Shown here: positions 3,247 through 39,311 of the stretch, in pieces
Numbering within the stretch: the first letter of the stretch is position 1
Layout of the letters: every line of letters begins with the position of its first letter
IMG/VR virus record: IMGVR_UViG_3300042317_001568
Coordinates: 1-64,000 of that record
Length of the DNA: 64,000 nt
Reading direction: 5' to 3' (one strand)
Translations under genes and position numbers: made by a program
The notes under the pieces: generated by a model
The model's database searches: none
What the model was told of the DNA's origin: nothing
The model's input: only the letters and a program-made list of their open reading frames with translations

Positions 3247-4362
3247 ATGGACGCCAAACCTACGCTGCACCTTATTGGTATCTTTCACACGATTCACAAT
3301 CAGGAGTATTCGCATTGCGCGTTTACTGGTAAAGCGCTGCGTTTCTCCAAGATGATGCGGGCCTATGGCTACAACGTCATTGAGTATGCCAACGAGGGCA
3401 GCGAAAGCGAAGCCAATGAAAAAGTCGTCATGCTGCGCTCTGACGAATTTCAAACAATGCTGGGCCGCACATCCAAAACAGCGTTCCACGGTGACCACGC
3501 GTCTACAGGGACTAAGCATCACAGTAAGTTTGAAGAGCGCTTAATCCCCGAATTAAAGAAACGCGTTCAGCCAAGAGACATTATTTGCCACCCGTTTGGC
3601 CACTCTCACGCGTCTGCCTGCAATGAGTTCCAGAAACATCTGCATTGCGAGACCGGCATCGGGTATCCTACGACCATGCCGGGAACAATGAAGATTTTCG
3701 AGAGCTACGCGTGGCGGCACTTTCATTGCGGCAAAGATAATCGGCAGGGCACAAACTACGAGTGGGTAATCCCGAACTACTTTGAAATTGACGACTGGGA
3801 CCCGCAGTACGAACCCGGCAAATACATTGCGTTTATGGGGCGCATCACAGAGTCCAAGGGCCTGCCCACGATTAGCGAGCTCGCCAAGTATGTAGATAAA
3901 AAAATCATCCTGTGCGGGCAGGGCGACCATAAGACCTACATGCGCCCGAACATCGAATACTGGGGCCCGCTTGAAGGCCGGCAGCGCAGTATGTTTATTG
4001 GTAATGCAATCTGTTCGCTTATGCCCACGACGTTTATTGAGCCCTTCGGTGGTTCTGGGGTTGAAGGCATGCTATGTGGCACGCCGTTGATTGCGTCGGA
4101 TTACGGCGCGTTTACAGAGACCGTGCTGGAGGGTGTGACCGGATATAGATGCAAAACCTTGTGGGATTGGATAGAAGCTATCGAACGCGTCGGCGAGCTA
4201 GACCGCAAAGTTATTGCTGATCGTGCCCGCGCGACATATAGCCTGCAGGCGTGCGGCAAGAAGTATGACAAAGCTTTTACGCAAATGTCGCAACTACACG
4301 ATGACGGCTGGTACACGTTGCCCCCAAAATACCGAAAAGAACAGCTCCAAAAAAGCGCCTGA
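3247..4362 (+). CDS. Glycosyltransferase, GT-B fold (GT4-like)
   Basis: FMGRITESKG and EPFGGSGVEGMLCGTPLIASDYGAFTETV (E-x7-E motif). Confidence 0.9.
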   Translation: MDAKPTLHLIGIFHTIHNQEYSHCAFTGKALRFSKMMRAYGYNVIEYANEGSESEANEKVVMLRSDEFQTMLGRTSKTAFHGDHASTGTKHHSKFEERLIPELKKRVQPRDIICHPFGHSHASACNEFQKHLHCETGIGYPTTMPGTMKIFESYAWRHFHCGKDNRQGTNYEWVIPNYFEIDDWDPQYEPGKYIAFMGRITESKGLPTISELAKYVDKKIILCGQGDHKTYMRPNIEYWGPLEGRQRSMFIGNAICSLMPTTFIEPFGGSGVEGMLCGTPLIASDYGAFTETVLEGVTGYRCKTLWDWIEAIERVGELDRKVIADRARATYSLQACGKKYDKAFTQMSQLHDDGWYTLPPKYRKEQLQKSA

Positions 4363-4458: not shown

Positions 4459-4638
4459 ATGTCCCCGCGGAGAATCATTGGTGAATGCGCGTTAGTGGTC
4501 GGCGTGCTCGGCGGAACGGTTGTCGGCTTTTTAGCCGGCAGTCATTTCGTCGAACCGCAGATACAACTCGTGTTCGCTTTTATCGGCATGGCTCTTGGTG
4601 GAGCTTTTGTCGATATATGCTTAAGAGGAGGACAGTGA
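4459..4638 (+). CDS. Small two-TM membrane protein
   Basis: GGAGG RBS; two hydrophobic helices. Confidence 0.7.
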   Translation: MSPRRIIGECALVVGVLGGTVVGFLAGSHFVEPQIQLVFAFIGMALGGAFVDICLRGGQ

Positions 4639-5270
4639 TGTTTGCAAAGCTGTTGTTGATTGTCGTGTGCCTGACTGCCGTAGCTCACGGACAGAACCAG
4701 CCCACGCAGAAGGATATCGACCAGATGCGTGATTCGCTGGTCGCAAACTTCGACGCCCAGTCTCGCGAGGACGTCGATGCGATGATTGCGACGATCAGTC
4801 CGAAGGGTCAGCAGATGGCTGGCCCCACCGAGATGGCCGAGCTTCGGGAAGAATCCTTGAAACTCTTCGAGGAAACAAACCTGAAGCTACGGTTGGTCAG
4901 CCTGCACGTGTACGACTACTCGCCACCCAGCGTCAGCGGCTGCGCGTACGCCGACGTCGTGCAGCTCACGCTGCCGTCGGAGCATTCGTACGCGGACTTG
5001 GAGGAGTACCCGGCCGACATGAGCTCGCTCTGGCGGCACCACTCGGGGGCCTTGCCCACATCGCAGCTGGTGAAGTATGTTCTTCGGTTCGACTACGACC
5101 CGAAGGACCGCACGTGGAAACCGACGCGGATCGTGGAGCCGCCGAAGCCCGTGAGCAACTGGCCTGAGAACACTCAGGAAGTGATGCACGGCAAAGTGGC
5201 GGACCCGACAAGTCGGACCGGGGTGTGTTCAAACGGCAGATGTTCGAACAGGCTTACCAACAACCGGTAA
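4638..5270 (+). CDS. Secreted protein, possible NTF2/SnoaL-like fold
   Basis: GAGGAG RBS, signal peptide MFAKLLLIVVCLTAVAHG, then a helix-helix-beta pattern. Confidence 0.7.
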   Translation: MFAKLLLIVVCLTAVAHGQNQPTQKDIDQMRDSLVANFDAQSREDVDAMIATISPKGQQMAGPTEMAELREESLKLFEETNLKLRLVSLHVYDYSPPSVSGCAYADVVQLTLPSEHSYADLEEYPADMSSLWRHHSGALPTSQLVKYVLRFDYDPKDRTWKPTRIVEPPKPVSNWPENTQEVMHGKVADPTSRTGVCSNGRCSNRLTNNR

Positions 5271-5530
5271 GCGGTCGACTGGGCGACCTAAAATAGGACT
5301 TAAGCCTAGTGCGTGGGGAGCGCTAATCCGCTCCCCGATGTCTGCGTTCATAGTCGTTCATGATTGGCTGTGGCGTGGGTTATTGACACTCCTCGGCCTG
5401 CGTATGCCAACAGCCCTGCAAGGCTGCAAAAATACGTAGGCAGGCACGCCTGTGGTTGCAGCCGCAGTTTGGAAAGTCGCGCGCGTTATCGGGTTTCTCG
5501 GTGACGAAGTGTGGCGGCAGTGTCAGTCTC
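5271..5530 (+). ncRNA. Candidate structured RNA or leader upstream of tRNA-Lys
   Basis: No ORF. Hairpins 5315-5336 and 5396-5441, plus long-range pair TTGACACT(5383)/AGTGTCAG(5519). Confidence 0.4.
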
Positions 5531-5604
5531 GCCCCTTTAGCTCAGTTGGTTAGAGCATCGGACTTTTAATCCGTTGGTCCTAGGTTCGAATCCTAGAAGG
5601 GGCA
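5531..5604 (+). tRNA. tRNA-Lys(UUU)
   Basis: Cloverleaf; acceptor GCCCCTT/AAGGGGC, anticodon loop CT-TTT-AA, GGTTCGAATCC. No encoded CCA. Confidence 0.95.
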
Positions 5605-5642
5605 ATGGTTCAGTTGTTTTTTCACATCAAGGAGGGCGTGAA

Positions 5643-5852
5643 ATGAACTGGTTAATTATGTTGCTGATGTCGATCGTTGTGCCGGTCGTCCAGCCTGTCG
5701 TTCAGCAAGGAGTGCAGAACGTTCAGGTCCGCGTTGCGCAACGCATGCAACAACAGGCGGTCAAGCCCGTACAGCCCGCGGTCGTTTTTCATAACGGTCA
5801 GTGGTGGAAGTACGAGCAGGGCCAATGGTGGGTGTGGCAGGAACGCAGATGA
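5643..5852 (+). CDS. Small Gln/Val/Trp-rich exported protein
   Basis: GGAGGG RBS; hydrophobic N-terminus; GQWW repeats. Confidence 0.7.
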   Translation: MNWLIMLLMSIVVPVVQPVVQQGVQNVQVRVAQRMQQQAVKPVQPAVVFHNGQWWKYEQGQWWVWQERR

Positions 5853-6133
5853 CGAACTTTGAGTATCCGGTGGAAGAGTGGTTCACCGGACAGTACGCAG
5901 ACATCCCAATCCATATGCAGGAGACGATCAAACGGTACGTGATTGAAAAAGTCAGGCCGGGTGATTTTCTTTCTGCTATCATCACGAACGATCTCCGCGG
6001 CGCCGTTAACTACGCGGACGCCGACAACCTAGCCCGGATCAAGTTGTATGTGCAGTGGTTTTACAACCGCGCGCCAGCAATTTGCTCGGGTAGCAAGGAA
6101 GCGATGACCAACTGGCTTTCGGGTAACGCGTAA
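5849..6133 (+). CDS. Hypothetical phage protein
   Basis: ATGA overlap with the previous gene; PGDFLSAIITNDL segment. Confidence 0.75.
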   Translation: MTNFEYPVEEWFTGQYADIPIHMQETIKRYVIEKVRPGDFLSAIITNDLRGAVNYADADNLARIKLYVQWFYNRAPAICSGSKEAMTNWLSGNA

Positions 6134-6140
6134 ACCCGTC

Positions 6141-6225
6141 GGGGTTGTGGCGAAATGGCAGACGCAGCGGACTTAAAATCCGCTGGGAAGTAATTCCCGT
6201 GTGGGTTCGAGTCCCACCTCCCCCA
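6141..6225 (+). tRNA. tRNA-Leu(UAA), long variable arm
   Basis: GCGGA-CT-TAA-AA-TCCGC, variable arm GGGAA/TTCCC. The acceptor stem has two mismatches. Confidence 0.85.
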
Positions 6226-6343
6226 ATGATGATGACGATACACCGAAGTCGCCGGTCTTGTGTTCTGCAGTTTACTTCCTGACCTGCGGAACACGAGCGT
6301 ACGTTGCGCTCGCCGGCGATTTCTTTTTTCTATTGGAGCTCCC

Positions 6344-6598
6344 ATGAACAAGTGTCCGGAATGCAATGCCAGCCTCGACGGCGGCGGGATTTTTGAGACC
6401 TTGCGACCACAAGACTGGTGCGCACACATGGACGACGACGAATTGCGCAAATATGTGGAAGACCACTACGGCGCCGTCGATGCGCGATTCAGCCGGGTTA
6501 TTGGTGTCGAGTACCGCGGGCGTTACGACGGTGTGTGGGAATGGCGTTGCCCTGACTGTGCGGCAACGTGGCCTAGATTCGCGGAAGGGAAACGATGA
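6344..6598 (+). CDS. Hypothetical Zn-binding protein
   Basis: CPEC...CPDC; GGAG RBS. Confidence 0.75.
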   Translation: MNKCPECNASLDGGGIFETLRPQDWCAHMDDDELRKYVEDHYGAVDARFSRVIGVEYRGRYDGVWEWRCPDCAATWPRFAEGKR

Positions 6599-6894
6599 GT
6601 TTTTTACACCAGAAATACGCGTTTCGAGAAGGGTGCTGTACGACCACGCTGGTCGACGCAGAAACTACGCGCAACACGCTGCGTGTTGATGGCCCGTGTT
6701 TTTACTGCAAAGAGCCGCAATCTGTCACGGTTCCGGCGGAAGCGCTTATTCGGTTTGGGCAGGGCGATTTCGCTCAAAACTGTTTTCCAAACCTAACCCC
6801 GGGACAGCGCGAGTTCTTGATATCCGGGATTTGTGACCCGTGCTGGGATCAGATGTTTGGAGCCGATGAAGAAGATGAGGAACCTGACGCCTAG
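6595..6894 (+). CDS. Hypothetical Zn-binding phage protein
   Basis: CFYC...REFLISGICDPCW; ATGA overlap. Confidence 0.75.
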   Translation: MSFLHQKYAFREGCCTTTLVDAETTRNTLRVDGPCFYCKEPQSVTVPAEALIRFGQGDFAQNCFPNLTPGQREFLISGICDPCWDQMFGADEEDEEPDA

Positions 6895-6903
6895 GAGATC
6901 GAC

Positions 6904-7281
6904 ATGGCAGAGGAAGAAACAGTTGATCGGTTTGGATGGCGCAATTCCCACAAAGACTCGCCTGCAATGGGGCAGGAAGTCTACTATTTCGGTCCCAACA
7001 TAGGGATCGGAATCGGTCGGTACTCATACGAGGAAAACCGGTCATTTCGGCCGTATTCTTACGATGAAGCCGGCGTAAAAGTATATGACGACAAAGAGGT
7101 CGGGCTTTGTCCGCACATATTTACCAACAATAAATGGGGCGTGGTGGACGCGTGCGACGCCCCGCGATGGCAACCGTATGACCCAGAACGCGCCAAAAGC
7201 TGGTCGCCTATGCCGCCAGTCGGATATATCCGTCAAATCGTGCACGATCTCGACGCAATAACATATGTCGACGAGAAGTAA
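6904..7281 (+). CDS. Hypothetical protein
   Basis: GGAGA RBS; operon context. Confidence 0.7.
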   Translation: MAEEETVDRFGWRNSHKDSPAMGQEVYYFGPNIGIGIGRYSYEENRSFRPYSYDEAGVKVYDDKEVGLCPHIFTNNKWGVVDACDAPRWQPYDPERAKSWSPMPPVGYIRQIVHDLDAITYVDEK

Positions 7282-7299
7282 CAACAGAAAGAAGGTAAG

Positions 7300-7494
7300 A
7301 TGCCAGAAAATGTTTTTCTTTTTCAGCTGTTAACAGCGGCTGAAAAAAATATGCGCGAGGCTCTGGAGCCTTTGCAGAGTTTCGAGGCCGATGCTAAACA
7401 AAAAGATTCGCCGGCTGCGGTTCGTGGAAGGATCGCAGCAGACGCGATACGCGCGGCGTTGTTCGCGTTGCAGACAGTCAAGGCGGGAGCATGA
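7300..7494 (+). CDS. Hypothetical protein
   Basis: GAAGG RBS; helical sequence. Confidence 0.65.
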   Translation: MPENVFLFQLLTAAEKNMREALEPLQSFEADAKQKDSPAAVRGRIAADAIRAALFALQTVKAGA

Positions 7495-7498
7495 ACAA

Positions 7499-7572
7499 AG
7501 CCGCATAGCTCAATTGGTCAGAGCACCTCGTTTACACCGAGGGGGTTGGGGGTTCGAGTCCCTCTGCGGCTA
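7499..7572 (+). tRNA. tRNA-Val(UAC)
   Basis: Acceptor AGCCGCA/TGCGGCT; CCTCG-TT-TAC-AC-CGAGG; TTCGAGT loop. Confidence 0.95.
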
Positions 7573-7639
7573 TTAAACCCGGTGTGGGGCGCATCACGTG
7601 TTTTCAGGCACACCACTGAAAACAATCATGGAGGATTCT

Positions 7640-8017
7640 ATGGTCCGCAGTTTGCTGTGTCTGTTTTTGGTGGTGTCTGCCTTCACGGTCGAAGCAGCGC
7701 CACGGCGTCGTAGTTACACCTACACAACCCCGAGCACGTCATCGATGCCGCGCGTGTCAAGCTACACGTCAAGCTCGATGCCGGTTCATTCCAGTGGCGG
7801 CACTTCTTCCGCTCAGGGCGTTGCCGAGATGATGGCGTCTCGGGGCGTCATGCAGCATTTCGGAGGCAACTCCGGATATGAAGGGGTCGGCACCGGATCG
7901 ACGCCGGAACAGGCACTCGGCAATTGCTGCTATTCCAATAGCGGCATGGCTGTTGTTGATCAGGGCGTAGCCTGCGGCCGCAACGGCCGCTGGTACGCCT
8001 GCAAGCGTTACCGCTAG
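7640..8017 (+). CDS. Secreted protein with a minimal CAP/SCP-like domain
   Basis: GGAGG RBS, signal peptide, Ser-rich linker, then AQGVAEMMA...H-x-GG...EGVG...CCY...GRWYAC. Confidence 0.75.
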   Translation: MVRSLLCLFLVVSAFTVEAAPRRRSYTYTTPSTSSMPRVSSYTSSSMPVHSSGGTSSAQGVAEMMASRGVMQHFGGNSGYEGVGTGSTPEQALGNCCYSNSGMAVVDQGVACGRNGRWYACKRYR

Positions 8018-8067
8018 GCCCACTGGCGGGCGCTGGAGGAAGCCCAAGCCTCTGGCGCCCGCCTCAC

Positions 8068-8143
8068 GGGGCGTAAGGTAAGCCGGTTGCATCCAGCACT
8101 CTTATAAGGTGCCCATAGGTAGGTTCGACTCCTACACGCCCTA
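8068..8143 (+). tRNA. tRNA-Ile(UAU), atypical D-arm
   Basis: Acceptor GGGGCGT/ACGCCCT; GCACT-CT-TAT-AA-GGTGC; GTAGG-TTCGACT-CCTAC. Confidence 0.8.
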
Positions 8144-8162
8144 CTCACACTCGGAGACTGCG

Positions 8163-8588
8163 ATGAGTGACGTTCTAGTCGACATTCAGGAAGAGTACGG
8201 CTACCAGCATTGGTGGCTGCTCTGCACAGAAAAAGAATTTGCAGATATTTGCCGGCGCTGGCAGACTATGAAAAACCTATGCTGTTTGGTGCCGGTAGAC
8301 CTCGTGTTTCCCGGCGCCCGTGGACAGTTTAATCAATGGCCGCCGGAGGCCGCCTGCAAATCACGGGTAGAAAATGCCCGCGTAGTCCGCGCGCATGTAC
8401 ATCAGCACGACGATTCGTGGCTGGATGGCGTCACGTACAACATACCGGTCAGCGCCGACGAAAATGACGACTCTTTCGAGATTGACGGCGTGGTGTACAC
8501 TGGCGAGCAAATCATAGCGTTGCTCGCCGAGTCGCGCGCCAAGCGCACGGCAGACTATTTCGCGCTTCATCCGGAGGACGCGGGGTGA
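8163..8588 (+). CDS. Hypothetical protein
   Basis: GGAGA RBS; continuous ORF. Confidence 0.7.
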   Translation: MSDVLVDIQEEYGYQHWWLLCTEKEFADICRRWQTMKNLCCLVPVDLVFPGARGQFNQWPPEAACKSRVENARVVRAHVHQHDDSWLDGVTYNIPVSADENDDSFEIDGVVYTGEQIIALLAESRAKRTADYFALHPEDAG

Positions 8589-8863
8589 AACTCTTGCTTT
8601 GCCCGGAATGTTCTGACATATTCAACCTGCAAGCACACGTTAAAATGTGCAGCTGCGGGCAAACGCGTGGTCAGTACATTGACAATATAAATGCTGTCTA
8701 CTCTGGGGGTATACCTCTGGGGTTCGCTAACACCACGTTTCTTGAGGCGGTTGCAAATCAGCCTCAAGCTGGTGACGGCAAAACGTTTACTGCGTTTGTG
8801 ATTCCTGTTATGTGTCCCACTTTCAAGGAGCTACCCGATGGCCTTTCGAAGAGTGAACGCTGA
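8585..8863 (+). CDS. Hypothetical Zn-binding phage protein
   Basis: CPEC...CSCG; GTGA overlap. Confidence 0.75.
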   Translation: MKLLLCPECSDIFNLQAHVKMCSCGQTRGQYIDNINAVYSGGIPLGFANTTFLEAVANQPQAGDGKTFTAFVIPVMCPTFKELPDGLSKSER

Positions 8864-9005
8864 GCAGTATGTCGAGCTGTGTAACTTCTGCATGGAGAAT
8901 GACATCGCCTACGAGCTAAAAACGCTCGACAAGACGACGTTGCTCTTCGGGCTCGACCGACGATTCTGGCATGCGATTGACTACGGAGCGCTCGCGTGCG
9001 TGTAG
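8838..9005 (+). CDS. Small hypothetical protein (55 aa, not in the ORF track)
   Basis: AAGGAG RBS; MAFRRVNAEQYVELC...; ends just before tRNA-Glu. Confidence 0.55.
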   Translation: MAFRRVNAEQYVELCNFCMENDIAYELKTLDKTTLLFGLDRRFWHAIDYGALACV

Positions 9006-9008
9006 TTA

Positions 9009-9081
9009 GGCCCCATCGTCTAGAGGCCTAGGACACCACCCTTTCACGGTGGATACTGGGGTTCGAATCCCCATGGGGTCA
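9009..9081 (+). tRNA. tRNA-Glu(UUC)
   Basis: Acceptor GGCCCCA/TGGGGTC; CCACC-CT-TTC-AC-GGTGG. Confidence 0.95.
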
Positions 9082-9115
9082 GTGGTTCGATTTTCTTTAA
9101 CAACAAAGGTTTCCC

Positions 9116-9274
9116 GTGAAAAGCCAGTATTTTTTCATCGCTGCCGCAGGGCTGAGTTTTGTCTTCAGTGTTAGTCTCTGGTTTGCCGGAGAGACTGATT
9201 TGAATCGGCAGCAGGCCCTTTTCGTAGGGCTGTGGGTGCCTAGTATCTTGGGTCTGGGGACACTCTTAAAGTGA
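9116..9274 (+). CDS. Small two-TM membrane protein (52 aa, not in the track)
   Basis: MKSQYFFIAAAGLSFVFSVSLWF...LFVGLWVPSILGLG. Confidence 0.65.
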   Translation: MKSQYFFIAAAGLSFVFSVSLWFAGETDLNRQQALFVGLWVPSILGLGTLLK

Positions 9275-9372
9275 CTAACTTCACGATTTTCATCGTCGGA
9301 ATTATCGTGACACTGATAACAGGAATGGGCGTTCTGCTCAGTCTTGTGTCCATTGGGTACAAAAAAAAGTAA
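9271..9372 (+). CDS. Small single-TM peptide (33 aa, not in the track)
   Basis: GTGA overlap; MTNFTIFIVGIIVTLITGMGVLLSLVSIGYKKK. Confidence 0.6.
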   Translation: MTNFTIFIVGIIVTLITGMGVLLSLVSIGYKKK

Positions 9373-9386
9373 GTATCTTCTGGCGT

Positions 9387-9460
9387 GACTCGGTAGCCCA
9401 ACTGGCAGAGGCGCAGGATTTAGGTTCCTGTTGTTGTGGGTTCGACTCCCACCCGGGTCA
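9387..9460 (+). tRNA. tRNA with UAG anticodon (Leu), short variable loop
   Basis: Acceptor GACTCGG/CCGGGTC; CAGGA-TT-TAG-GT-TCCTG; 5-nt variable loop; A73. Confidence 0.85.
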
Positions 9461-9486
9461 TTGGTCTTTTTCTATAGGAGCGCATT

Positions 9487-9798
9487 ATGCGTATTTGGCT
9501 CGATGACGTTCGGCCCATGCCGGCTGAGTGGGACGTATGGCTCAGGACAGCCGAACAAGCTATTCTGGCTATCAAGCTTGGCGGCGTGACGGCTATTTCA
9601 CTGGACCACGATCTCGGCGACGAGTCTGCTAAGACCGGCTACGACGTGGCGAAGTTCATCGAAGAAGGAGCCTTTAAGGATACAATAGCTCCCATAGAAA
9701 TCTACGTCCACACCGCAAACGCGGCGGGCAGACAAAACATCATCCGTTCGATTCGCAAAGCCGAGAAGTTTTGGCATGAGCGACTCACGCGGACTTGA
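9487..9798 (+). CDS. Cyclic-phosphate-processing receiver-like domain protein
   Basis: IWLDDVR...ISLDHDLGD...TGYDVAK...VHTAN signature. Confidence 0.85.
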   Translation: MRIWLDDVRPMPAEWDVWLRTAEQAILAIKLGGVTAISLDHDLGDESAKTGYDVAKFIEEGAFKDTIAPIEIYVHTANAAGRQNIIRSIRKAEKFWHERLTRT

Positions 9799-9921: not shown

Positions 9922-10268
9922 GGGGGCGTACTGGTATCGACAGGATAAAGAAGGTAAAGACTGCGTGTCGTGGTTGATCGGGTGGCCACGTTAAAACTCG
10001 ATTATGTTTCTAGCTGGCGCACATGCACCGGCCCTCGCTGCCTGACCTAGGTTAGGTGGTGAGTGGGGCGTCCTGAGCCCCATCGCCCAATCAGGATGAC
10101 GCCGATAATCGGCTGATCTGGCCCAGCAAGAAAGGGCAAGATGGTGGTAGCCCACCTGACGCCGATAATCGGCTAACTTTGGCAGTAGTGTAAACAACAA
10201 CTGCCTACACACGTAGACGTTTTTACTAGGCATATCTCTGGACGCGGGTTCGACTCCCGCCGCCTCCA
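9922..10268 (+). ncRNA. ssrA: tmRNA
   Basis: 5' GGGGGCGTACTGGTATCGAC; 3' GGACGCGGGTTCGACTCCCGCCGCCTCCA; internal reading frame ending ALAA-TGA (10043-10045). Confidence 0.93.
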
Positions 10269-10271
10269 CTG

Positions 10272-10332
10272 CACTACCGCGCTTTGACTGCATGGGTAAA
10301 ACCCTAAGTCAAAGCGCGGTAGTGTTTTTTTT
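10272..10332 (+). terminator. Intrinsic terminator with an 18-bp perfect stem
   Basis: CACTACCGCGCTTTGACT / AGTCAAAGCGCGGTAGTG followed by T8. Confidence 0.85.
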
Positions 10333-10337
10333 GTACT

Positions 10338-10367
10338 CCCATCGGCAACGTGCCGGTGGGTTTTTTT
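10338..10367 (+). terminator. Second tandem intrinsic terminator
   Basis: CCCATCGGCA-ACG-TGCCGGTGGG followed by T7. Confidence 0.75.
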
Positions 10368-10404
10368 GTTGATTATCTTTCCCCAGCAGAAGGAGTTGCT
10401 GCAA

Positions 10405-11037
10405 ATGGCAACGAAGGCACGGAGTAAGAAGTCGCGGATTGCCAATAAGACCGCGATCAAGAAGAAGCAGACGGCCACGAGCGTGAGCCGTATCGATGTC
10501 ACGAAGGTGGCGACAGGACTTGTGGCGCAGATCACCGCGGCGCTGAAGCGCTTCGGCAAGGTCGACCATCACAAGCTCCGGACGACTGTTTACGCTAACC
10601 GCGAGGTGGCGCTGAACATTCTGCCTGCGCACGTGCGAGGTGCTTCCAAGCGTGTGGACAACTCTTGTCCGGTCGCGAGGGCGCTGCTCGCGTCGCCGCT
10701 TGGTCAGTGGATCACCGACGCACATGTCGGTAATACCACTGTGCGTGTTTGGAACGCGGCTGTTCCAGACTTGGAGGTTAAGTTCCTGTTGTCCCCTGAG
10801 TTGATGTACGCTGTAAAGGCGTGGGATCGGCCGAACGGAAAGTGGGAACTTGATCCCGGAGTGTACTGGCTGCACTCGTACCCGCGATCGCTCCGACGTG
10901 GTTACGTGGCGCGTGAGCCGCGGACCTATTCAGAATCGGGTCCTCGTGTCCGCACGGCGATGCGGCATATCACGCGTCTCAACGACGTGCGGCGCGCGAT
11001 GGCTTTGTCGGATGTCAAGATGACCAAGAAGCGCTAA
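10405..11037 (+). CDS. Basic hypothetical protein
   Basis: AAGGAG RBS; Lys/Arg-rich termini; SCPVARAL segment. Confidence 0.75.
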   Translation: MATKARSKKSRIANKTAIKKKQTATSVSRIDVTKVATGLVAQITAALKRFGKVDHHKLRTTVYANREVALNILPAHVRGASKRVDNSCPVARALLASPLGQWITDAHVGNTTVRVWNAAVPDLEVKFLLSPELMYAVKAWDRPNGKWELDPGVYWLHSYPRSLRRGYVAREPRTYSESGPRVRTAMRHITRLNDVRRAMALSDVKMTKKR

Positions 11038-11169: not shown

Positions 11170-11628
11170 ATGGACAAGCTGCTGTTTCTTGATGTCGATG
11201 GTGTGCTTAACAACGCCCGAATATTACGCGCAGAAAGTATTTTTGGGCTCGGTTGCAAGCAATTGAGTCTTCTAAAGCTTATCGTAGCTAACACTTGTTG
11301 TGAAATCGTACTCTCGTCAACGTGGCGACTGAACGACGAGCATAGAGAAGCGCTGCGTAACGCTTTTGAAGAACACTTAATACCTATGTGGATCGGGCAA
11401 ACGCCTGATTTGGGCATTTGCATGCGTCGTGACGAGATACTTTCGTGGATGATTGGGCATGAGGCGCCGGCCAAAGTCGTTATTCTCGACGACGACAAGG
11501 ACGCAATGCTGGTAAACGCGCCAGAACGCTTCCGAGAACGGCTTTTTGTGCACACTAACTTCGATCATGGTCTTACGTTAGACCACGCGGAGGCGATTTT
11601 GGAGTTTTTTAAGGAGGACTGTAAGTGA
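11170..11628 (+). CDS. HAD-superfamily phosphatase, RNA-repair (Swiss-army-knife) type
   Basis: LFLDVDGVLN (DxD), IVLSSTWR, VVILDDD, GLT. Confidence 0.85.
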   Translation: MDKLLFLDVDGVLNNARILRAESIFGLGCKQLSLLKLIVANTCCEIVLSSTWRLNDEHREALRNAFEEHLIPMWIGQTPDLGICMRRDEILSWMIGHEAPAKVVILDDDKDAMLVNAPERFRERLFVHTNFDHGLTLDHAEAILEFFKEDCK

Positions 11629-11837
11629 TTATGCGTCATTTAGAGGCAATGATTCTGCAAGAGCGCGGCGACAACCGAAATCTGCTCGCGGAAATCAAAG
11701 AAAAGCTGTCTCCTGAGTCGCAGGAACGGCTTTTCCGCCTTTTCCAAGACCATGAGCACGAGATTGGCCGCCTGAAAAGGAAAGCCAGCATGACTTCGGC
11801 AGCAATCGCGAGTCATCTGGCTGGTTTTGGACGCTGA
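11625..11837 (+). CDS. Hypothetical protein
   Basis: GGAGG RBS; GTGA overlap. Confidence 0.65.
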   Translation: MIMRHLEAMILQERGDNRNLLAEIKEKLSPESQERLFRLFQDHEHEIGRLKRKASMTSAAIASHLAGFGR

Positions 11838-11843
11838 AAAGCA

Positions 11844-11942
11844 GTGTTTTGACGTAACTCCTTATCGCGCAGTAGTTTACGACCGCTGGCATATGCTATT
11901 TGTCGTAAATGTCTGTGCGGTAAGGAGTTACGCAAAATACAC
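11844..11942 (+). repeat. About 40-bp imperfect inverted repeat (long hairpin)
   Basis: Arms 11844-11883 and 11902-11942; several mismatches are G-U on the + strand. Confidence 0.85.
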
Positions 11943-12012
11943 CAAACGCAACGATCCGTTTTTTTAGCTAATAGCGCCCCTGTATACTCATTTGTTTACA
12001 CAGGAGGGCGCT

Positions 12013-12084
12013 ATGGATACCTGCAGCTTCGATTTTGAGGACATTATGTCCTTCCTGTTCGACGACGACTGGGACGCCGAATAG
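12013..12084 (+). CDS. Putative 23-aa acidic peptide
   Basis: GGAGGG RBS; MDTCSFDFEDIMSFLFDDDWDAE. Confidence 0.45.
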   Translation: MDTCSFDFEDIMSFLFDDDWDAE

Positions 12085-12109
12085 CCCTAAATACCCCCTA
12101 TGGCGAATA

Positions 12110-12138
12110 GCTAAATATAGGCCAAAAACAGGGTATAT
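12110..12138 (+). promoter_or_regulatory. Bipartite promoter-like motif, copy 2
   Basis: GCTAAAT-N15-GGTATAT. Confidence 0.7.
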
Positions 12139-12140
12139 GA

Positions 12141-13142
12141 ATTGACGGGGATAATAGGTATTGCCTATAGACCCGTCCCGGAACCCGCTACGGTGAAAGT
12201 GGGACCAGACCTGCAGCAGCAGTGTTCTGGGCTTAATACTGCGGGGAAGCGCCGCAGGGCTGATGATCGGCCGCCACAATCCGTCGGGTCCGTTGCAGTG
12301 GACCAGTGAGACGTTAAAACAGAATCTCGACTGCGCGGCCTAATACGCCGTAACGTTCTGGCTGTAAAGTCAGATCGTTATCCGCACCGCTACAGGTGTG
12401 GGTGAGCCGGCCCTTCTCGATGGGGTCTGGTTTCCCGATGGGGGTGTGCACTCATTAGAGCACCTCCATTAAGACGTTGTGGCGCCTCTTCTGCGCGACC
12501 AACGTACGGCCTGTGTCAATATAAGTCGTACCCAAGGTACGCTTTTGAAACAGGGTTTGCTGCTAATTCCTCCAGCGCAGCACACGGTTTTCGCAAGCCG
12601 TCCAATCGGGAGTCGATTCAGTGTAGGGAGACAAAGTAGCCATGGCGAAATGTTTCCAGCAGTGTTGACAGGGCGTAACGCACCCTGTGTGTGACACACT
12701 GCGATCTACAGCTGCAATCGGCTGCGAACCCATCTTCGGTTCGTGAGTGGAGGACAATACACGCTAGCCGCAAGGCTGGCACGTCGTTTCTTCCGACGTA
12801 GCGGAAGAGGTTTGACCAACAAGCCTAACTGTTGGTGATCGTATGTGGGTTAAACCACAAACGTTCGCGAGCCGCTCAGTCGCCAAAGTTCCAAGAGCCC
12901 TTAGTTGCGTTACGGAAGTGAAACGCAACGGCTAGCCGTGTAGCAGGAACGTGTATTAAGACACGTACACGGCACAATAAACGCCTACCACCGGGCGATA
13001 TGGCGTGGCTGCCGCACGAGGGAAGTAACGTGCGTGGGGACCGGCACCTAGCCGGGGCTGTGGACGCACAGTTGACGCTTAAATGGAAGACGCGGCGAGG
13101 TGCACCTCAAAGCGAGCCGGGTTCGATTCCCGGCATAGTGTC
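12141..13142 (+). ncRNA. Candidate giant structured ncRNA 1 (about 1 kb)
   Basis: No credible ORF; many hairpins and long-range helices; T-arm-like 3' end; promoter motif directly upstream. Boundaries are approximate. Confidence 0.65.
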
Positions 13143-13228
13143 TAGTTTTTTGGCAAGGTACCGTTCCCTGCCACCCCATCTGAGGGCTTTTGAACGGACG
13201 CGTGTCTCGAAAGAGAAAGGGGAGTGCT

Positions 13229-14101
13229 ATGAGCACTTTCAAGTCAGTTGTCGCCAGCCCGTTTTACGGGTTCGGCTGGGTCGCTGGTCAGATCAAGAAC
13301 GGCTACGACAAGGCGGTGAACGCCACGTCGTCGGCCGCGTCGCAGGTGGCCACCGCCGCCACCTCGACGGCCAAGGCCGCCAAGGCCAAGGCCACCAAGG
13401 CGGGCAAGGCCGTGAAGGGCGGCGCCAAGGCGGCCAAGGCTGCTACGGTTAAGGCCGGCAGCTCGGCCAAGGCGAAGGTTGCGTCCTTCGCCCGCCACGC
13501 CGCCGCCGATGCCCGCGGGCTCGGCGCCATGCTGTTCGGCATGGTCAAAGTGGCCGCCGTGGGCGTTGTCACGATTGCCACCGCGGTTCTCCTCGGTGTC
13601 GTCAAGACGGTGGGCTTGGTGGCCCACGCCGTGGGGCTGATTGCCCTCGGCGTGGCGGCGTTGGTGGTGACTAGCTTCTCGCTGGTTGCCATTGCAGCGT
13701 TCTGCGTGGCGTTTCTCGCAACGCTCGCCGTGGTGTTCATCGTCCGCGGAATCTTCACAGCGCTCGCGGCTGTGGGGCGGTTTCTGACCGGCGAAGGCGG
13801 CATGGTTATCGCGACCGTGTTGCACGACCTGTCGGTGTTCTGCTGCTTCCTTGCCGCCGTTTACGCCTGCGTTGCGGTGGCGGCGGTGGCCATTCCGGCG
13901 CTCGGGATTGCCGCCGCCAATGCTGCCGCCGTGGCGGTGATCGCCACGTGGTGTGCCCTGCTGGGCGCGGGAACGGGGATTGCCGGCCTTCTGCTGGAGG
14001 CCGCCAACCGCCTCCCGGAGGTTGTGGTGTATGCGCCGCCCAGTCGGCGTATCCTGCCTAACGACGTCTATCCGGGCGTCATCGGCACCGCGACTGCCTG
14101 A
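13229..14101 (+). CDS. Ala/Lys-rich multi-pass membrane protein
   Basis: GGGGAG RBS; AKA repeats followed by several hydrophobic helices. Confidence 0.8.
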   Translation: MSTFKSVVASPFYGFGWVAGQIKNGYDKAVNATSSAASQVATAATSTAKAAKAKATKAGKAVKGGAKAAKAATVKAGSSAKAKVASFARHAAADARGLGAMLFGMVKVAAVGVVTIATAVLLGVVKTVGLVAHAVGLIALGVAALVVTSFSLVAIAAFCVAFLATLAVVFIVRGIFTALAAVGRFLTGEGGMVIATVLHDLSVFCCFLAAVYACVAVAAVAIPALGIAAANAAAVAVIATWCALLGAGTGIAGLLLEAANRLPEVVVYAPPSRRILPNDVYPGVIGTATA

Positions 14102-14259: not shown

Positions 14260-14886
14260 ATGGGAATTCTGGACACCAAGGCTGCCGTGGCGTGCACGGT
14301 TGCTCACGAGTCGATTCAGCAGATGCGGAAGTATGGCGACCGGCGCTATTACACGCACCCGCTGACGGTGGCCGCGCTCGTGCACACGCTGCCGGGCACG
14401 GACGAGGCGATGTTCGCTGCGGCGTGCCTCCATGACGTCATCGAAGACGTCTACCCGAAGAACCCCGCCTACGGCCCCGCGTGGGTTGCGAACAACTTCG
14501 GCGAGGAAGTGCTGCTGCTCGTTCATGAGCTCACCAACGAGTTCACGAAAGAGCGGTATCCCGACCTCAACCGCAACGAGCGGAAGCGGCGGGAGAGTCT
14601 GCGGCTCGCCGACATCTCCGACGCCGCGAAGGTTGTGAAGCAGGCAGACCTGTATCACAACAGCACGGAGATCAGCCCTGACACCCGCTTCTGGGGTCAA
14701 TGGTTGAAGGAGAAGAACGAGCTCGACGAGCTCATCGGCGCGTGGGAGGACCGCGAGTGCGGCTTCCTCACGGGTGGCGACGTCTGGAGTCTTGTCGGCT
14801 CTGGCGAGTTCAAGATGCTCGTCGCTACGGCGCACGAGATCGACGAGTTCTACAAGGTCGCCGACTGGGGCCTTGTGACTGCGTAA
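14260..14886 (+). CDS. HD-domain hydrolase, RelA/SpoT-HD (Mesh1/SAH-like)
   Basis: AH...Q-x-RK...Y-x-x-HP-x-x-VA...AA-x-LHDVIED...FG-x-EV-x-x-LV-x-ELT...VK-x-AD-x-x-HN. Confidence 0.85.
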   Translation: MGILDTKAAVACTVAHESIQQMRKYGDRRYYTHPLTVAALVHTLPGTDEAMFAAACLHDVIEDVYPKNPAYGPAWVANNFGEEVLLLVHELTNEFTKERYPDLNRNERKRRESLRLADISDAAKVVKQADLYHNSTEISPDTRFWGQWLKEKNELDELIGAWEDRECGFLTGGDVWSLVGSGEFKMLVATAHEIDEFYKVADWGLVTA

Positions 14887-15069: not shown

Positions 15070-15492
15070 ATGGCATCTATCTACACCGCCGTCCTCCTGA
15101 CCGAAGAGTCCCGCCAGAACCTGATCGCGTTCTACGGTCTCACGTCGTTCTACGCGGAGGGTTGGGTCATCAAGGCCCACCACATGACGATCGATACCAA
15201 GTCTGCGGATAAGGCCGGCGTCGCGGACTTGGTCGGCAAAGAGTTCACGATGGACGTGACCGCCGTCGGCAGGCTCATGGTGGACGACACCCGCGGCATC
15301 GTCGCCGTGACTGTCGAGACTGCGGCCCCGTCGAAAAACGCCATCAAGCACGTCACGGTGGCGCACGCGGATGGCGTCAAGCCTATGATGTCTAACAACA
15401 TCACCGACTGGCGGCCCGTCAAGCCGGGCACGCTCACGCTCACGGGCGTCGTGTGCATGCTTGAGTCGGCTCCCGTGCCGGCGAAGAGCTGA
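15070..15492 (+). CDS. 2H phosphoesterase (cyclic phosphodiesterase-like)
   Basis: Two H-x-T motifs (HHMTI, KHVTVA) with 2H spacing; AAGGAG RBS. Confidence 0.75.
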   Translation: MASIYTAVLLTEESRQNLIAFYGLTSFYAEGWVIKAHHMTIDTKSADKAGVADLVGKEFTMDVTAVGRLMVDDTRGIVAVTVETAAPSKNAIKHVTVAHADGVKPMMSNNITDWRPVKPGTLTLTGVVCMLESAPVPAKS

Positions 15493-15805: not shown

Positions 15806-16303
15806 GTGGATATTTTTCTAGACATAAAAAGGCAGCAAGAATACGCGAAACAGCTGGAAGACGGCGACAGGCGTAACGTGGAAGACTGGGCCCGCAACCA
15901 AGAGCGCCGTAATGAGGCAAAGCGCCGCGGCCTTTTTCAGCGCGATAAGCCCAAAGAGCGCCGCATTGCTATTTTTCAGCGCTGGCAAAAAATGCGTAAA
16001 GCGAGTGCCATCAAGCTGCGCGCCCCGGACGGCGACTCTAGGTTTTGTTTATGTAAATGCGGTCGGCCCAAGGCGTGCGCACAAACGCACTGCTACGACT
16101 GTCAGGACATGATGTTTATTGTCCGGCACAGGATACCAATGTCTGGCGCAGTAGAAGTCGAAAAGCGATATGGGCGAATATACGAAACGCCCCTGCTGCG
16201 CCACGACATCGACTACCGATCGTCTAGGTACGAGGACAGTGAGAACTTCGGTAGCCTCCACAATGTGATTCGGGCGATGGAAGACTCCCTAGCGTACGAT
16301 TAA
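15806..16303 (+). CDS. Hypothetical protein with a Cys cluster
   Basis: AAGGGAG RBS; CLCKC...CYDC. Confidence 0.65.
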   Translation: MDIFLDIKRQQEYAKQLEDGDRRNVEDWARNQERRNEAKRRGLFQRDKPKERRIAIFQRWQKMRKASAIKLRAPDGDSRFCLCKCGRPKACAQTHCYDCQDMMFIVRHRIPMSGAVEVEKRYGRIYETPLLRHDIDYRSSRYEDSENFGSLHNVIRAMEDSLAYD

Positions 16304-16305
16304 AC

Positions 16306-16387
16306 GCTAAATAGTCTCCAAAAGCCTGACATATACAGAAAATGCGGGTTTCTGCTGAGCTAAATATTCAGCAAAAACACGGCATAT
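16306..16387 (+). promoter_or_regulatory. Tandem bipartite promoter-like motifs, copies 5 and 6
   Basis: GCTAAAT-N15-GACATAT (16306-16334) and GCTAAAT-N15-GGCATAT (16359-16387). Confidence 0.7.
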
Positions 16388-16391
16388 CTAG

Positions 16392-17070
16392 TGCTCAGCG
16401 CGCTAGCTGTCGACGGCTACGCGCTAATTGACGTGAATTCGTTCTGAGCCTGCGCGGTGTACCATTGCTTGAACGGATGCTTCCGTGGTGATTCGAGCAG
16501 TGAGTAAAAGCTGCGCAGGCTTTTCCGTAAATACGTCCGCGGCAGGCAGTTAAGCCGCGTAGAAAACTGCCAATACACTCGACCTTCGCCTTGCGAGAAT
16601 GCGGCGAACAGAATCTGCCGTCACGGGCACCATCTTTGGTGGCTCGAAAGTTGGGCGATCATCGGCCCAAAGGCGGGATAGGACGCACACTATCCGCGCT
16701 ACGCGATTTGTAAATCCCAAAGTGGAAGGAGGAAATGTCGAATTCCCAAAGCAAGGAATTCCGTAGCAGGCTGTGTAAGACTGCGCAAAAAGCATTTCCA
16801 AGCGCCCCGGACCGCTAGCTCAAACACAACGACGCTAGAAGAGGGTTCGGTACCGGATGGGCCGGTCGTGATTCATAGCATAAACCTGCGTTTGTTACTT
16901 TGGTCGGCCAACCAAATAATAAACAAAGGCGCTACTGCAGTCGGTCGTACAACTGACTGTAGAGTAATCGCGTGACTGATGAGGATAGCAAACACGTAGT
17001 TGGGGAACTCGTAGCAGGTTAGCGTCTGCTGCGATGCTTCTTCCCAAAGGTGGTGCCCGTGACGGCAGTT
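16392..17070 (+). ncRNA. Candidate large structured ncRNA 2 (about 680 nt)
   Basis: No credible ORF; 25-bp long-range stem 16615-16639/17044-17068; many nested hairpins; tandem promoter motifs upstream. Confidence 0.65.
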
Positions 17071-17103
17071 GTTAGTTTAACCCCTAAGAAAGGATGGACT
17101 CTC

Positions 17104-17319
17104 ATGTTGTTTATTGGAATGCTCGGTGCGGTGTTCGTGCTCGGTGCGGTTGCTGGGACCATCAGCGACATGGTCAATACCGAAAAGCCTAAAATGGCCA
17201 CCACGTTTACTCGTGTTTCGACCAAGGTCACGAGCGGTATCGTCGACGTGGACCCGAATGGCAACATCATCAGGATCACCGACGCCTCCGGGCGCGTGGT
17301 CTATGAGGAGGGGGCTTAA
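17104..17319 (+). CDS. Small membrane-anchored protein
   Basis: AAGGA RBS; N-terminal TM segment. Confidence 0.7.
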   Translation: MLFIGMLGAVFVLGAVAGTISDMVNTEKPKMATTFTRVSTKVTSGIVDVDPNGNIIRITDASGRVVYEEGA

Positions 17320-33381: not shown

Positions 33382-33453
33382 TGCCCGATAGCACAACGGT
33401 AGTGCGGCAAACTGTTAATTTGTAGGTTGTAGGTTCGAATCCTACTCGGGCAG
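33382..33453 (+). tRNA. tRNA-Asn(GUU)
   Basis: Acceptor TGCCCGA/TCGGGCA; GCAAA-CT-GTT-AA-TTTGT; G73. Confidence 0.95.
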
Positions 33454-37776: not shown

Positions 37777-37915
37777 TCAACTAAGTCTTTTGTCTTGGGT
37801 CTTCGCGGCAATTTGCGCGGGGCTCCTTTTTTTGGCGGCGGCTGCTTCGGCCAATTCCAGTCACGCCGATACACGCGCCACGAACACGGTAGTTGTATCC
37901 GCTCAGACAAAGTAG
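37742..37915 (+). CDS. Small membrane protein
   Basis: AGGGAG RBS; one TM segment. Confidence 0.5.
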   Translation: MKAIAIPQHYRNQLSLLSWVFAAICAGLLFLAAAASANSSHADTRATNTVVVSAQTK

Positions 37916-37925
37916 TGGTGCCGCC

Positions 37926-39311
37926 ATGGACGGCCTCTCCGTACTTGACCCGTCGGGCTGGGAGCCGACCAGCCTAAAGAAATGCGCCGCGTATGCGCAG
38001 GGTAATGCGCTAGGCTGGCTGAGCCGTTCTGATAAGCAAGCGAGCGTCAATCACCCGCTCGCCGGCCGCCTGTATTTAGCCAAAAGCGGGTGGCTGCTTC
38101 TTTCTGTCCCGAACGCCTTTGTGCGTGGCGTGTACGACGCCCTTGTTGCGCCGGGCGCTGAACTTCCGCTTGCCGGCACCATGAACGTGCCCAATGTCGA
38201 CGCGGGCGTCCTGAACGCCCATATTTCCGTAATGACTGCCGACGAGGTGCAGTCAATCGGCGCCGACAAGATTAACGAGCGCGGGCACATGTTTTACTAC
38301 GGCCTCGGCCCAGTGAAAGAGATTCCCGTTACCAGCATCGAAGGCGTCAGCAAAGTCTGGGTTGTGCAGGTAGCCAGCCCGACCCTCGCGGCTTTGCGCA
38401 AAAGCTACGGCCTGACCCCGCTACCGAAAGGAAACCACCCGTTCCACATCACTATTGCCGCTCGGCGCAAGCACGTGATGGGCAACAACACTGTCAGCAA
38501 ATTTGACACAGCCCAAGGCCGCGGCGAGCTAAAAGCCGCAGAACTTTCCCGTTCGGGACAAAAAGTTGCCCGCTCGGGACAAAACGACCTTTTACCGGGC
38601 GGAAAAGCCGACAATTTACCCGATCGGGATTTTTCTTCGTCTGCCTTAGCTGAAGGAGCTAAACATGAACACGAACACGTCACAAATGACCAAATCGCCA
38701 AAGAAATTGCCAAAGATCATTTGCTCGAAGACCCCACCTACTACGAAAAAGTAAAGAAGATCGAAAAAGCGGCCAGCCCCGTGTTGAAAATGCTGCGCGA
38801 GGCCAAAGAGCACTCTGATAACAAGCGCTACGAGCACAAGGCGCGCATTTTGCGGCAATTGATGTCACAGTCTCCGCAAGACTGGGTGATCGACGACAAT
38901 AAGCCCAAGTTCAAGGGTGTGACACATAAACCTACGAACTTCCGCCTGCACGCCGACCCGCGCAGCATTGATCCGAGAGTAAAAGCCGCTTACTTCAACA
39001 CCAACTCGCCTTATCGCAGCGTGTACGTTCAGGAGATGCTCAATCAGTTTAACCGGCGCATTCCGATTACGTACGATCACAACTTGCCGCTGTTTAAAAA
39101 CATCCAGAATCAGTTGCTAGAGGTCAAGAACCGCGGAGACTTTATTCTGCGCACGAGGCAGAACGCCGAGATGTACCGGGCGCATCTTGATCCGATGTAT
39201 CGCCAGCAGCGGGCGCTTGATGCGTTCCACAACCGCGACCAGCAGATGCCCATGCTCGACCGCGTGATTTCGCGACACGGTAACGACATTCTTGGCGCTG
39301 GAGGTGCGTGA
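37926..39311 (+). CDS. Modular protein: 2H-phosphoesterase-like domain, a module resembling DUF5661, and further modules
   Basis: NAHISV and FHITIA; EGAKHEHEH...AKEIAKDHL.EDP.YY. Confidence 0.7.
   Translation: MDGLSVLDPSGWEPTSLKKCAAYAQGNALGWLSRSDKQASVNHPLAGRLYLAKSGWLLLSVPNAFVRGVYDALVAPGAELPLAGTMNVPNVDAGVLNAHISVMTADEVQSIGADKINERGHMFYYGLGPVKEIPVTSIEGVSKVWVVQVASPTLAALRKSYGLTPLPKGNHPFHITIAARRKHVMGNNTVSKFDTAQGRGELKAAELSRSGQKVARSGQNDLLPGGKADNLPDRDFSSSALAEGAKHEHEHVTNDQIAKEIAKDHLLEDPTYYEKVKKIEKAASPVLKMLREAKEHSDNKRYEHKARILRQLMSQSPQDWVIDDNKPKFKGVTHKPTNFRLHADPRSIDPRVKAAYFNTNSPYRSVYVQEMLNQFNRRIPITYDHNLPLFKNIQNQLLEVKNRGDFILRTRQNAEMYRAHLDPMYRQQRALDAFHNRDQQMPMLDRVISRHGNDILGAGGA

Follow-up and report, generated by a model that had tools for sequence, protein, structure and literature searches.

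The 1 kb gene-free stretch at positions 12141-13142 (+ strand) of the window, that is, of the whole 64,000-nt stretch of IMG/VR virus record IMGVR_UViG_3300042317_001568 that we analyzed, encodes a large, elaborately folded non-coding RNA, inferred from sequence alone, which carries a tRNA-like tail, is conserved in one lineage of uncultured jumbo phages and matches no described RNA family. We hold with high confidence that it represents a real and new structured RNA family, while its release as a stand-alone RNA is only more likely than not. An earlier note had described this stretch as a candidate giant ornate RNA that starts right after a promoter copy, lacks a credible ORF and ends in a T-arm without a canonical anticodon arm, and had proposed that it is either a member of the GOLLD or ROOL classes or a new one. 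Our results confirmed the observation. The interpretation was only partly supported, since the stretch is a large, highly structured non-coding RNA gene with a tRNA-like 3′ module and is new rather than known, but membership of GOLLD or ROOL was not supported.

A gene-free and highly structured region conserved among relatives

To begin the characterization of the region, we searched it for reading frames. No ORF longer than 76 aa lies within 12141-13142 in any frame, and the genes around it all read rightward. Next, we compared its folding energy with that of dinucleotide shuffles. The + strand folds to −431.4 kcal/mol against −370.3 ± 8.7 for the shuffles (z −7.1), while the − strand reaches only z −3.4; taken separately, 12141-12765 gives z −5.2 and 12766-13073 gives z −4.3. 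The T-arm GCCGGG-TTCGATT-CCCGGC lies at exactly 13116-13134, as the earlier note had reported. The promoter-like repeat ahead of the start is also real, with related copies at 4361, 12103 and 14940 and at about 16362.

To determine whether the region belongs to a described class, we searched Rfam 15 at the gathering score with the whole window and with ten homologous loci, and at E ≤ 10 with permissive filters using 11800-13400 and four homologous loci. Nothing relevant was found at the gathering score, and at E ≤ 10 only weak matches carried by the T-arm appeared, to the Deinococcus Y RNA (20.3 bits, gathering score 80, with most of its stem positions mismatched) and to the mascRNA-menRNA model (19.4 bits, gathering score 42.5). 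Neither GOLLD (RF01998) nor ROOL (RF03087) matched the window or any homolog searched, and the models of tmRNA, RNase P RNA, group I and group II introns, OLE and HEARO gave no match in 11800-13400 at E ≤ 10. RNase P-like, rRNA-like and Y-RNA-like resemblances suggested by short motifs were not backed by any model match and were rejected. Elsewhere in the window, Rfam and ARAGORN identified six tRNA genes at 5531-9461 and one at 33382 (by Rfam; ARAGORN adds a tRNA-Ile at 8068-8144), a tmRNA at 9922-10271 and a pistol ribozyme at 5273-5343.

The window is part of a 205-kb IMG/VR contig, and identical copies occur in three other contigs. The phage belongs to a lineage that encodes its own multisubunit RNA polymerase, with a fused β/β′ RNA polymerase subunit at 47108-51511 and the rest of β′ at 52474-54384. 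When the HAD and RNA polymerase proteins were searched with tblastn against cultured phages, nothing closer than about 35 and 32% identity was found, so there is no cultured model; the nearest cultured phages, Salmonella phage Arash and some Vibrio phages, share about 32% identity in the polymerase protein. A blastn search in distant mode of 12100-13200 against the INPHARED phages gave no match. Searches of IMG/VR with the flanking HAD and HD proteins returned only identical copies of the same phage plus one unrelated HD locus (L008), which has no gap and no Rfam match at the gathering score. Four DNA patterns from conserved blocks returned only this phage in IMG/VR, and 56 other matches to the 16-mer were shown by nhmmer to be due to chance; one pattern gave three chance matches inside coding sequence in JGI metagenomes and one gave none in GTDB genomes. 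Literature searches found no description of this RNA. The family is therefore new to Rfam 15 and to the papers searched, and so far confined to one uncultured phage lineage.

Divergent relatives were obtained from metagenome contigs through the upstream neighbor at 11170-11628, a HAD_SAK_2 protein (the HAD domain of 'Swiss Army Knife' RNA-repair proteins), which has a graded series of homologs at 93-59% identity. Ten distinct loci (designated with L numbers below) keep the same order of tRNAs, tmRNA, HAD, a gene-free gap of 0.9-1.6 kb, a membrane-protein gene and, in most loci, an HD_4 gene, while a more distant locus, L019, at 51% HAD identity, has no gap. An nhmmer search showed that the gaps are homologous to the region in the window. 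A FastTree tree splits the 11 sequences into clade A (window, L011, L016, L014, L009, L017 and L082) and clade B (L013, L018, L083 and L084). Alignment of these loci outlined the following features, all on the + strand:

12013-12084, conserved acidic micro-ORF of 22-25 codons (motif ..DI[ML]xFLFxDDWDxE*), directly upstream of the putative RNA promoter
12111-12138, promoter-like 28-mer, CTAAATATnGGnCAAAAACnGGGTATAT
12141-12765, conserved RNA core of about 625 nt (498-648 nt in relatives), with at least 20 helices and a 5′-terminal hairpin at 12144-12177
12766-12973, lineage-specific insertion of stable hairpins
12974-13073, 3′ domain of hairpins
13074-13142, 69-nt tRNA-like module
13152-13197, conserved pseudoknot in the leader of the downstream gene
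13229-14101, downstream gene, whose product has a Lys/Ala-rich N-terminus followed by a hydrophobic multi-pass region

The micro-ORF precedes the RNA in all 11 loci (in L018 it was read from the alignment), its C-terminal half is conserved, acidic and aromatic, and the alignment shows synonymous-type changes. The 28-mer is nearly invariant in all 11 homologs and unique at ≤3 mismatches in the window, with looser copies of the same type of motif ahead of the genes at 4361 and 14940 and ahead of a second non-coding stretch at about 16362; we take it as a promoter of the phage's transcription program, which is an inference. The downstream gene is always present after the RNA, and its product has no Pfam or PHROG match.

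Compensatory changes in the conserved core

We then asked whether the core behaves as a structured RNA, a point that the earlier note had set as a test, together with the absence of hidden conserved frames. RNAalifold on the 11 cores predicted 107 pairs, 36 of them kept through changes on both sides. With ribosum scoring the consensus energy is −261, compared with −175 ± 7.7 for column-shuffled alignments. Of the 162 pairs in that structure, 91% of cells are canonical and 39 pairs show compensatory double changes, against 0-9 when every 3′ partner is slid by 1-3 columns, a control that keeps the phylogeny. Counting on the FastTree tree gave 52 canonical-to-canonical double substitutions in 41 pairs, against 3-15 in the slid controls, and nine pairs changed at least twice independently. 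It must be considered that the 11 sequences come from one phage lineage in two clades and that many of the compensatory changes separate these two clades. G:U cells outnumber A:C cells 152 to 48, which points to the + strand as the transcript. None of the short ORFs of the region stays open in the homologs, where they carry stops and frameshifting indels. Within clade A the core is 84-94% identical to that of the window, where the adjacent HAD gene is 68-79% identical.

The best-supported helices, in window coordinates, are the following; several more exist in clade A only:

12144-12159 with 12163-12177
12239-12246 with 12250-12257
12294-12302 with 12327-12335
12442-12452 with 12457-12467
12475-12486 with 12493-12504
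12510-12514 with 12550-12554
12524-12532 with 12536-12543
12584-12588 with 12597-12601
12622-12633 with 12651-12710 (two stacked helices)

Of the helices listed in the earlier note, those lying in the conserved core, GACGGG/CCCGTC, TCTGGC/GTCAGA, CCGCACC/GGTGTGG, ACGTTG/CAACGT, ACGGTTT/AAGCCGT and ACAGGG/CCCTGT, are backed by compensatory changes. In contrast, the long-range helix GGGACCAGACC (12201)/GGTCTGGTTTCCC (12424) was rejected as not conserved, since its 5′ strand sits in a 27-nt insertion found only in the window and L011 while the 3′ strand is conserved in relatives that lack the insertion. Some helices, such as 12258-12263 with 12267-12272, are invariant and thus receive no support from covariation. 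Some long-range pairings differ between two RNAalifold runs and involve invariant bases; for 12281-12292, the runs disagree between a long-range and a local partner. The helices GCTAGCC-GCAA-GGCTGGC, ACCAACA/TGTTGGT, GTTGCGTT/AACGCAAC and ACGTGT/ACACGT, at 12766-12973, are present in the sequence and in the minimum free energy fold, but lie in a lineage-specific segment with no divergent homolog, so that their only support is the single-sequence fold.

These results refine the extent of the element. The evolutionarily conserved unit is the 5′ core, which ends at a conserved GGACAAUnCAyG, while the next roughly 310 nt are lineage-specific or shared by only three sequences. The 12766-12973 segment is absent in L011 and L009 and replaced by unrelated, longer inserts in L014, L016 and L082. 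The 12974-13073 domain is shared with L011 and L082 and in part with L017, L016 and L014, and its hairpin CUGUG-GACG-CACAG covaries, with ACGG/CCGU in L017 and CCACGCG/CGCGUGG in L016.

Two kinds of proposed 3′ end and a leader pseudoknot

Next, we studied the 3′ end. In the window, the module has a 6-bp acceptor-like stem (13074-13079 with 13137-13142), a 12-nt single strand containing GG, a short tetraloop arm in place of the anticodon arm and the T-arm with loop UUCGAUU, but no D stem and no 7-nt anticodon loop. In all seven clade A sequences a T-arm with a 5-6 bp stem is followed, after 0-2 nt, by a strand that pairs with an upstream segment, so the module fits the loose class of tRNA-like structures, defined by a T-arm with a canonical T-loop (UUCRANY) stacked on an acceptor-like stem, although L016 and L014 have a variant loop, UGCAAUY. 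The closing stems covary: GACGCU/AGUGUC in the window, GACGUU/AACGUC in L082, GACGCUU/AAGUGUC in L017, CCGUC/GACGG in L009, UUGCUC/GAGCAA in L016 and UUGCC/GGCAA in L014. Between the closing stem and the T-arm lie a single strand of 9-12 nt, which contains GG in most sequences, and one or more short arms; L009 has a 46-nt minimal version. This is the acceptor/T-arm half of a tRNA without a D stem or anticodon loop, and accordingly neither ARAGORN nor the Rfam tRNA model (RF00005) calls a tRNA at 13074-13142. No CCA is encoded. The T-run after the module (13146-13151) is not conserved, so it is unlikely to be a terminator, and no terminator follows in clade A; read-through into the downstream gene is therefore likely unless processing occurs.

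The tRNA-like end exists in clade A only. In clade B the core is followed within about 12 nt by a hairpin (GCGAGUG...CACUCGU, with one compensatory change in L018) and then U5-6 at the same junction, and a plain hairpin stands where clade A has the module. A strict terminator scan did not call this hairpin, because its U-run begins a few bases after the perfect stem, and we therefore consider it terminator-like only.

Downstream of the module or hairpin, every locus has a hairpin whose loop is complementary to a stretch 17-21 nt further on. In the window, the hairpin GGCAAGG/CCUGCC has a loop (CCGUUC) that pairs with GAACGG, and a small CCC/GGG hairpin lies between them. The loop-to-downstream pairing is found in all 11 sequences in four versions, CCGUUC/GAACGG, GUCAUUU/AAAUGAC, GCCAUUU/AAAUGGC and GUCGCU/AGCGAC, which is good covariation for a pseudoknot. 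It lies about 20 nt before the ribosome-binding site of the membrane-protein gene and matches no Rfam family.

Genomic context and possible roles

The RNA lies in an island of translation and RNA-repair functions. Besides the upstream tRNA genes and the tmRNA, it comprises cREC_REC, a cyclic-phosphate-processing receiver, at 9487-9795, HAD_SAK_2 at 11170-11625, HD_4 at 14260-14883, a weak 2H/CPD-like match below its cut-off at 15070-15489 and, further on, a 2H-SAK protein at 37893-39308. No Ro/TROVE protein or RNA ligase was found among the ORFs scanned in the window.

Taken together, what our analysis demonstrates is a conserved 5′ core whose many helices are maintained by compensatory substitutions on the + strand, a nearly invariant promoter-like element immediately upstream, the absence of a conserved reading frame and a conserved gene order. 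That the 28-mer acts as a promoter, that transcription starts at about 12141-12144 and, in the window's clade, runs through the variable insertion and the 3′ domain into the tRNA-like module, that a discrete transcript accumulates, and what the RNA does are all inferences. In this view, the module would serve as a signal for 3′-end formation and stabilization, where the tRNA-processing enzymes (RNase P and 3′ tRNA nucleases) would cut as at the MALAT1/mascRNA junction, releasing the RNA from the downstream mRNA, whose own leader begins with the pseudoknot; in the sister clade the hairpin plus U-run would do this job by termination. The presence of two different putative end-forming devices at the same junction is our main argument for the release, while the role of the module as a processing or stability signal is tentative. 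The most likely role of the released RNA is a trans-acting scaffold or assembly of the GOLLD/ROOL kind acting during infection with the tRNA, tmRNA and RNA-repair genes of the phage, possibly connected with tRNA handling, but this is a guess from context that we hold loosely.

The present RNA is the same kind of object as GOLLD and ROOL, but not a member of either family by the covariance-model test. GOLLD is likewise large (over 800 nt), ornate and phage-encoded, is often next to tRNA islands, has one conserved and one variable half, sometimes carries tRNAs covalently in a linker and is of unknown function (10.1101/2024.12.08.627333). Its conserved half is, however, the 3′ one, whereas here it is the 5′ one, and the element attached here is a stripped-down tRNA mimic at the 3′ end, not a true tRNA. 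ROOL is an RNA of phages and prophages with a highly complex fold, found near tRNA islands and without a known protein partner, and both RNAs form RNA-only cages of unknown purpose, a closed 14-mer in the case of GOLLD (10.1101/2024.12.08.627333). ROOL measures about 580 nt, a size similar to that of the core, but there is no evidence here for its pseudoknot pattern. MALAT1/MEN-β with mascRNA resembles our element in that a long ncRNA is followed by a tRNA-like structure lacking a normal anticodon arm, proposed to mark the cut that makes the 3′ end, but that system is eukaryotic and nuclear, and here there is no triple-helix stabilizer upstream. Like the tRNA-like domains of tmRNA and of bacterial Y RNA (YrlA), the module has an acceptor-like stem stacked on a canonical T-arm, a GG-containing single strand instead of the D stem and a location among RNA-repair genes; nevertheless, it lacks a Ro-binding stem, and the bona fide tmRNA of the window is a separate gene.

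The strongest alternative, which we consider unlikely, is that the stretch is one giant structured 5′ leader of the downstream membrane-protein mRNA, a cis-acting sensor or stabilizer with the clade B hairpin plus U-run as its expression platform. It is consistent with the lack of a conserved terminator in clade A, with the gene always following, with the pseudoknot just before its ribosome-binding site and with a second structured RNA, at 16615-17068, that also abuts the ribosome-binding site of the next gene. However, the core is separated from the leader by 0.1 to 0.7 kb of non-homologous sequence in different relatives, two different putative end-forming devices occupy the same junction, no sequence was seen in the core that could compete with the clade B hairpin, and an aptamer of 500-600 nt would be without precedent. 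Less likely still, the stretch could hold several small RNAs, for example a Y-RNA-like or tRNA-mimic RNA at the 3′ end plus upstream sRNAs, given that the module folds on its own and weakly matches the Y RNA and mascRNA models, that the middle segment is replaceable and that RNA-repair-type genes are neighbors, as at bacterial rsr/Y RNA loci. Against this, only one promoter-like element is present, predicted long-range helices tie the core together, the Y RNA match (bacterial Y RNA, RF01053 and relatives) is far below its gathering score and no TROVE gene was found among the ORFs scanned.

A very divergent GOLLD or ROOL RNA would agree with the size, ornate folding, phage origin, position beside a tRNA island and covalently attached tRNA-like element, but is very unlikely given the absence of matches to either Rfam model, even at E ≤ 10 with permissive filters, in the window or in four homologs, and the 5′ position of the conserved part. 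A decayed protein gene or a DNA-level element such as an origin or packaging site, for which nothing speaks beyond the lack of an ORF, is the least likely and already disfavored by the compensatory pairs with their 3:1 excess of G:U over A:C on the + strand, the absence of iterons or direct repeats inside the region, a nucleotide conservation higher than in the flanking gene and indels that are not in multiples of three. On the other hand, a bolder possibility, which we regard as doubtful, is that this lineage carries two unrelated, previously unknown classes of giant structured RNA driven by the same phage promoter type, the first being a functional partner of the surrounding tRNA, tmRNA and RNA-repair genes, for instance a tRNA-handling or tRNA-mimicking ribonucleoprotein scaffold, a decoy that counters host defenses which attack tRNAs, or an RNA-only assembly or ribozyme acting on its own tRNA-like tail, and thus more than an inert structured leader.

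Only a few bacterial and phage RNA classes above 500 nt are known, and their functions remain largely open. A further class, with strong covariation, a defined promoter-like element, a modular build (a conserved core, a swappable insert and either a tRNA-like or a terminator-type end) and a fixed place inside a tRNA, tmRNA and RNA-repair island, would give a new handle on why phages invest in such RNAs, and at about 500 nt in clade B it is small enough for cryo-EM and biochemical work. The exchange of a tRNA-like module for a terminator-like hairpin at one junction would also be a natural experiment on how bacterial and phage ncRNA 3′ ends are made.

Finally, we examined the second stretch, 16304-17049, which has no + strand ORF of 80 aa or more and starts with the same promoter type. 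It has no Rfam match, including at E ≤ 10 for 16300-17150, and paralogy with the first RNA was rejected, as there is no similarity beyond the promoter. Its 3′ part, at about 16615-17068, is conserved in L011, L014, L009 and L016 and closed by a helix of about 24 bp (16615-16639 with 17044-17068), and RNAalifold predicted 159 pairs, 46 of them compensatory in only five sequences.

A second structured RNA candidate and elements near the first RNA

Besides the first RNA, the window contains the following elements:
16362-17068, a second large, ORF-poor, conserved structured RNA candidate (promoter-like motif 16362-16389; structured part about 16615-17068)
13152-13197, a conserved pseudoknot in the 5' leader of the membrane-protein gene
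12013-12084, a conserved micro-ORF of 22-25 codons
11854-11931, a long imperfect hairpin of about 35 bp
5273-5343, a pistol ribozyme

The second RNA candidate has the same promoter type as the first RNA and is closed by a helix of about 24 bp. RNAalifold predicted 159 pairs for it, of which 46 were compensatory in 5 sequences. We found no Rfam match for this candidate, and it is unrelated in sequence to the first RNA.

In the leader pseudoknot, the loop-to-downstream pairing occurs in four covarying versions across 11 loci. This element is in no Rfam family, and it may play a role in translation or stability. The micro-ORF ends in an acidic and aromatic tail (..DIMxFLFDDDWDxE), has its own T-rich promoter-like element (11959-11995) and ribosome-binding site, and always sits just upstream of the RNA promoter. 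Between this micro-ORF and the 70-aa ORF lies the imperfect hairpin, which is flanked by CGTAAC...GTTACG and is conserved in most relatives with changes on both arms. The fold z-score for 11800-12099 was -6.2. The only match of the hairpin was to a miRNA model and was considered spurious.

Motifs bordering the tRNA and tmRNA genes

The pistol ribozyme, which scored 58.1 bits against a gathering score of 34.5, lies immediately after the ORF at 4485-5270 and just before the tRNA array. A DUF3800-VIII RNA motif was identified directly after the tmRNA gene in four relatives, namely L009 (1370-1445), L011 (4877-4953), L014 (139-214) and L016 (275-350), in a position corresponding to about 10272-10350 of the window. 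The motif is below threshold or absent in the window's own copy. In the window, 10200-10499 is very stably folded, with a z-score of -8.0.

Protein-coding genes around the RNAs

Several RNA-repair-type domains are spread around the RNA genes:
9487-9795, cREC_REC
11170-11625, HAD_SAK_2
14260-14883, HD_4
15070-15489, a weak tRNA-ligase CPD-like match
37893-39308, 2H-SAK

Together, these domains suggest a counter-measure island against RNA or tRNA damage. The protein encoded downstream of the first RNA (13229-14101) has a Lys/Ala-rich, histone-H1-like N-terminal stretch followed by a long hydrophobic multi-pass region; it has no family match and co-occurs with the RNA in every locus. Finally, the phage RNA polymerase is encoded as a beta subunit fused to the N-terminal part of beta' (47108-51511, 1467 aa), plus a separate beta' C-terminal part (52474-54384, 636 aa), and its nearest cultured relative, Salmonella phage Arash, is at about 32% identity.
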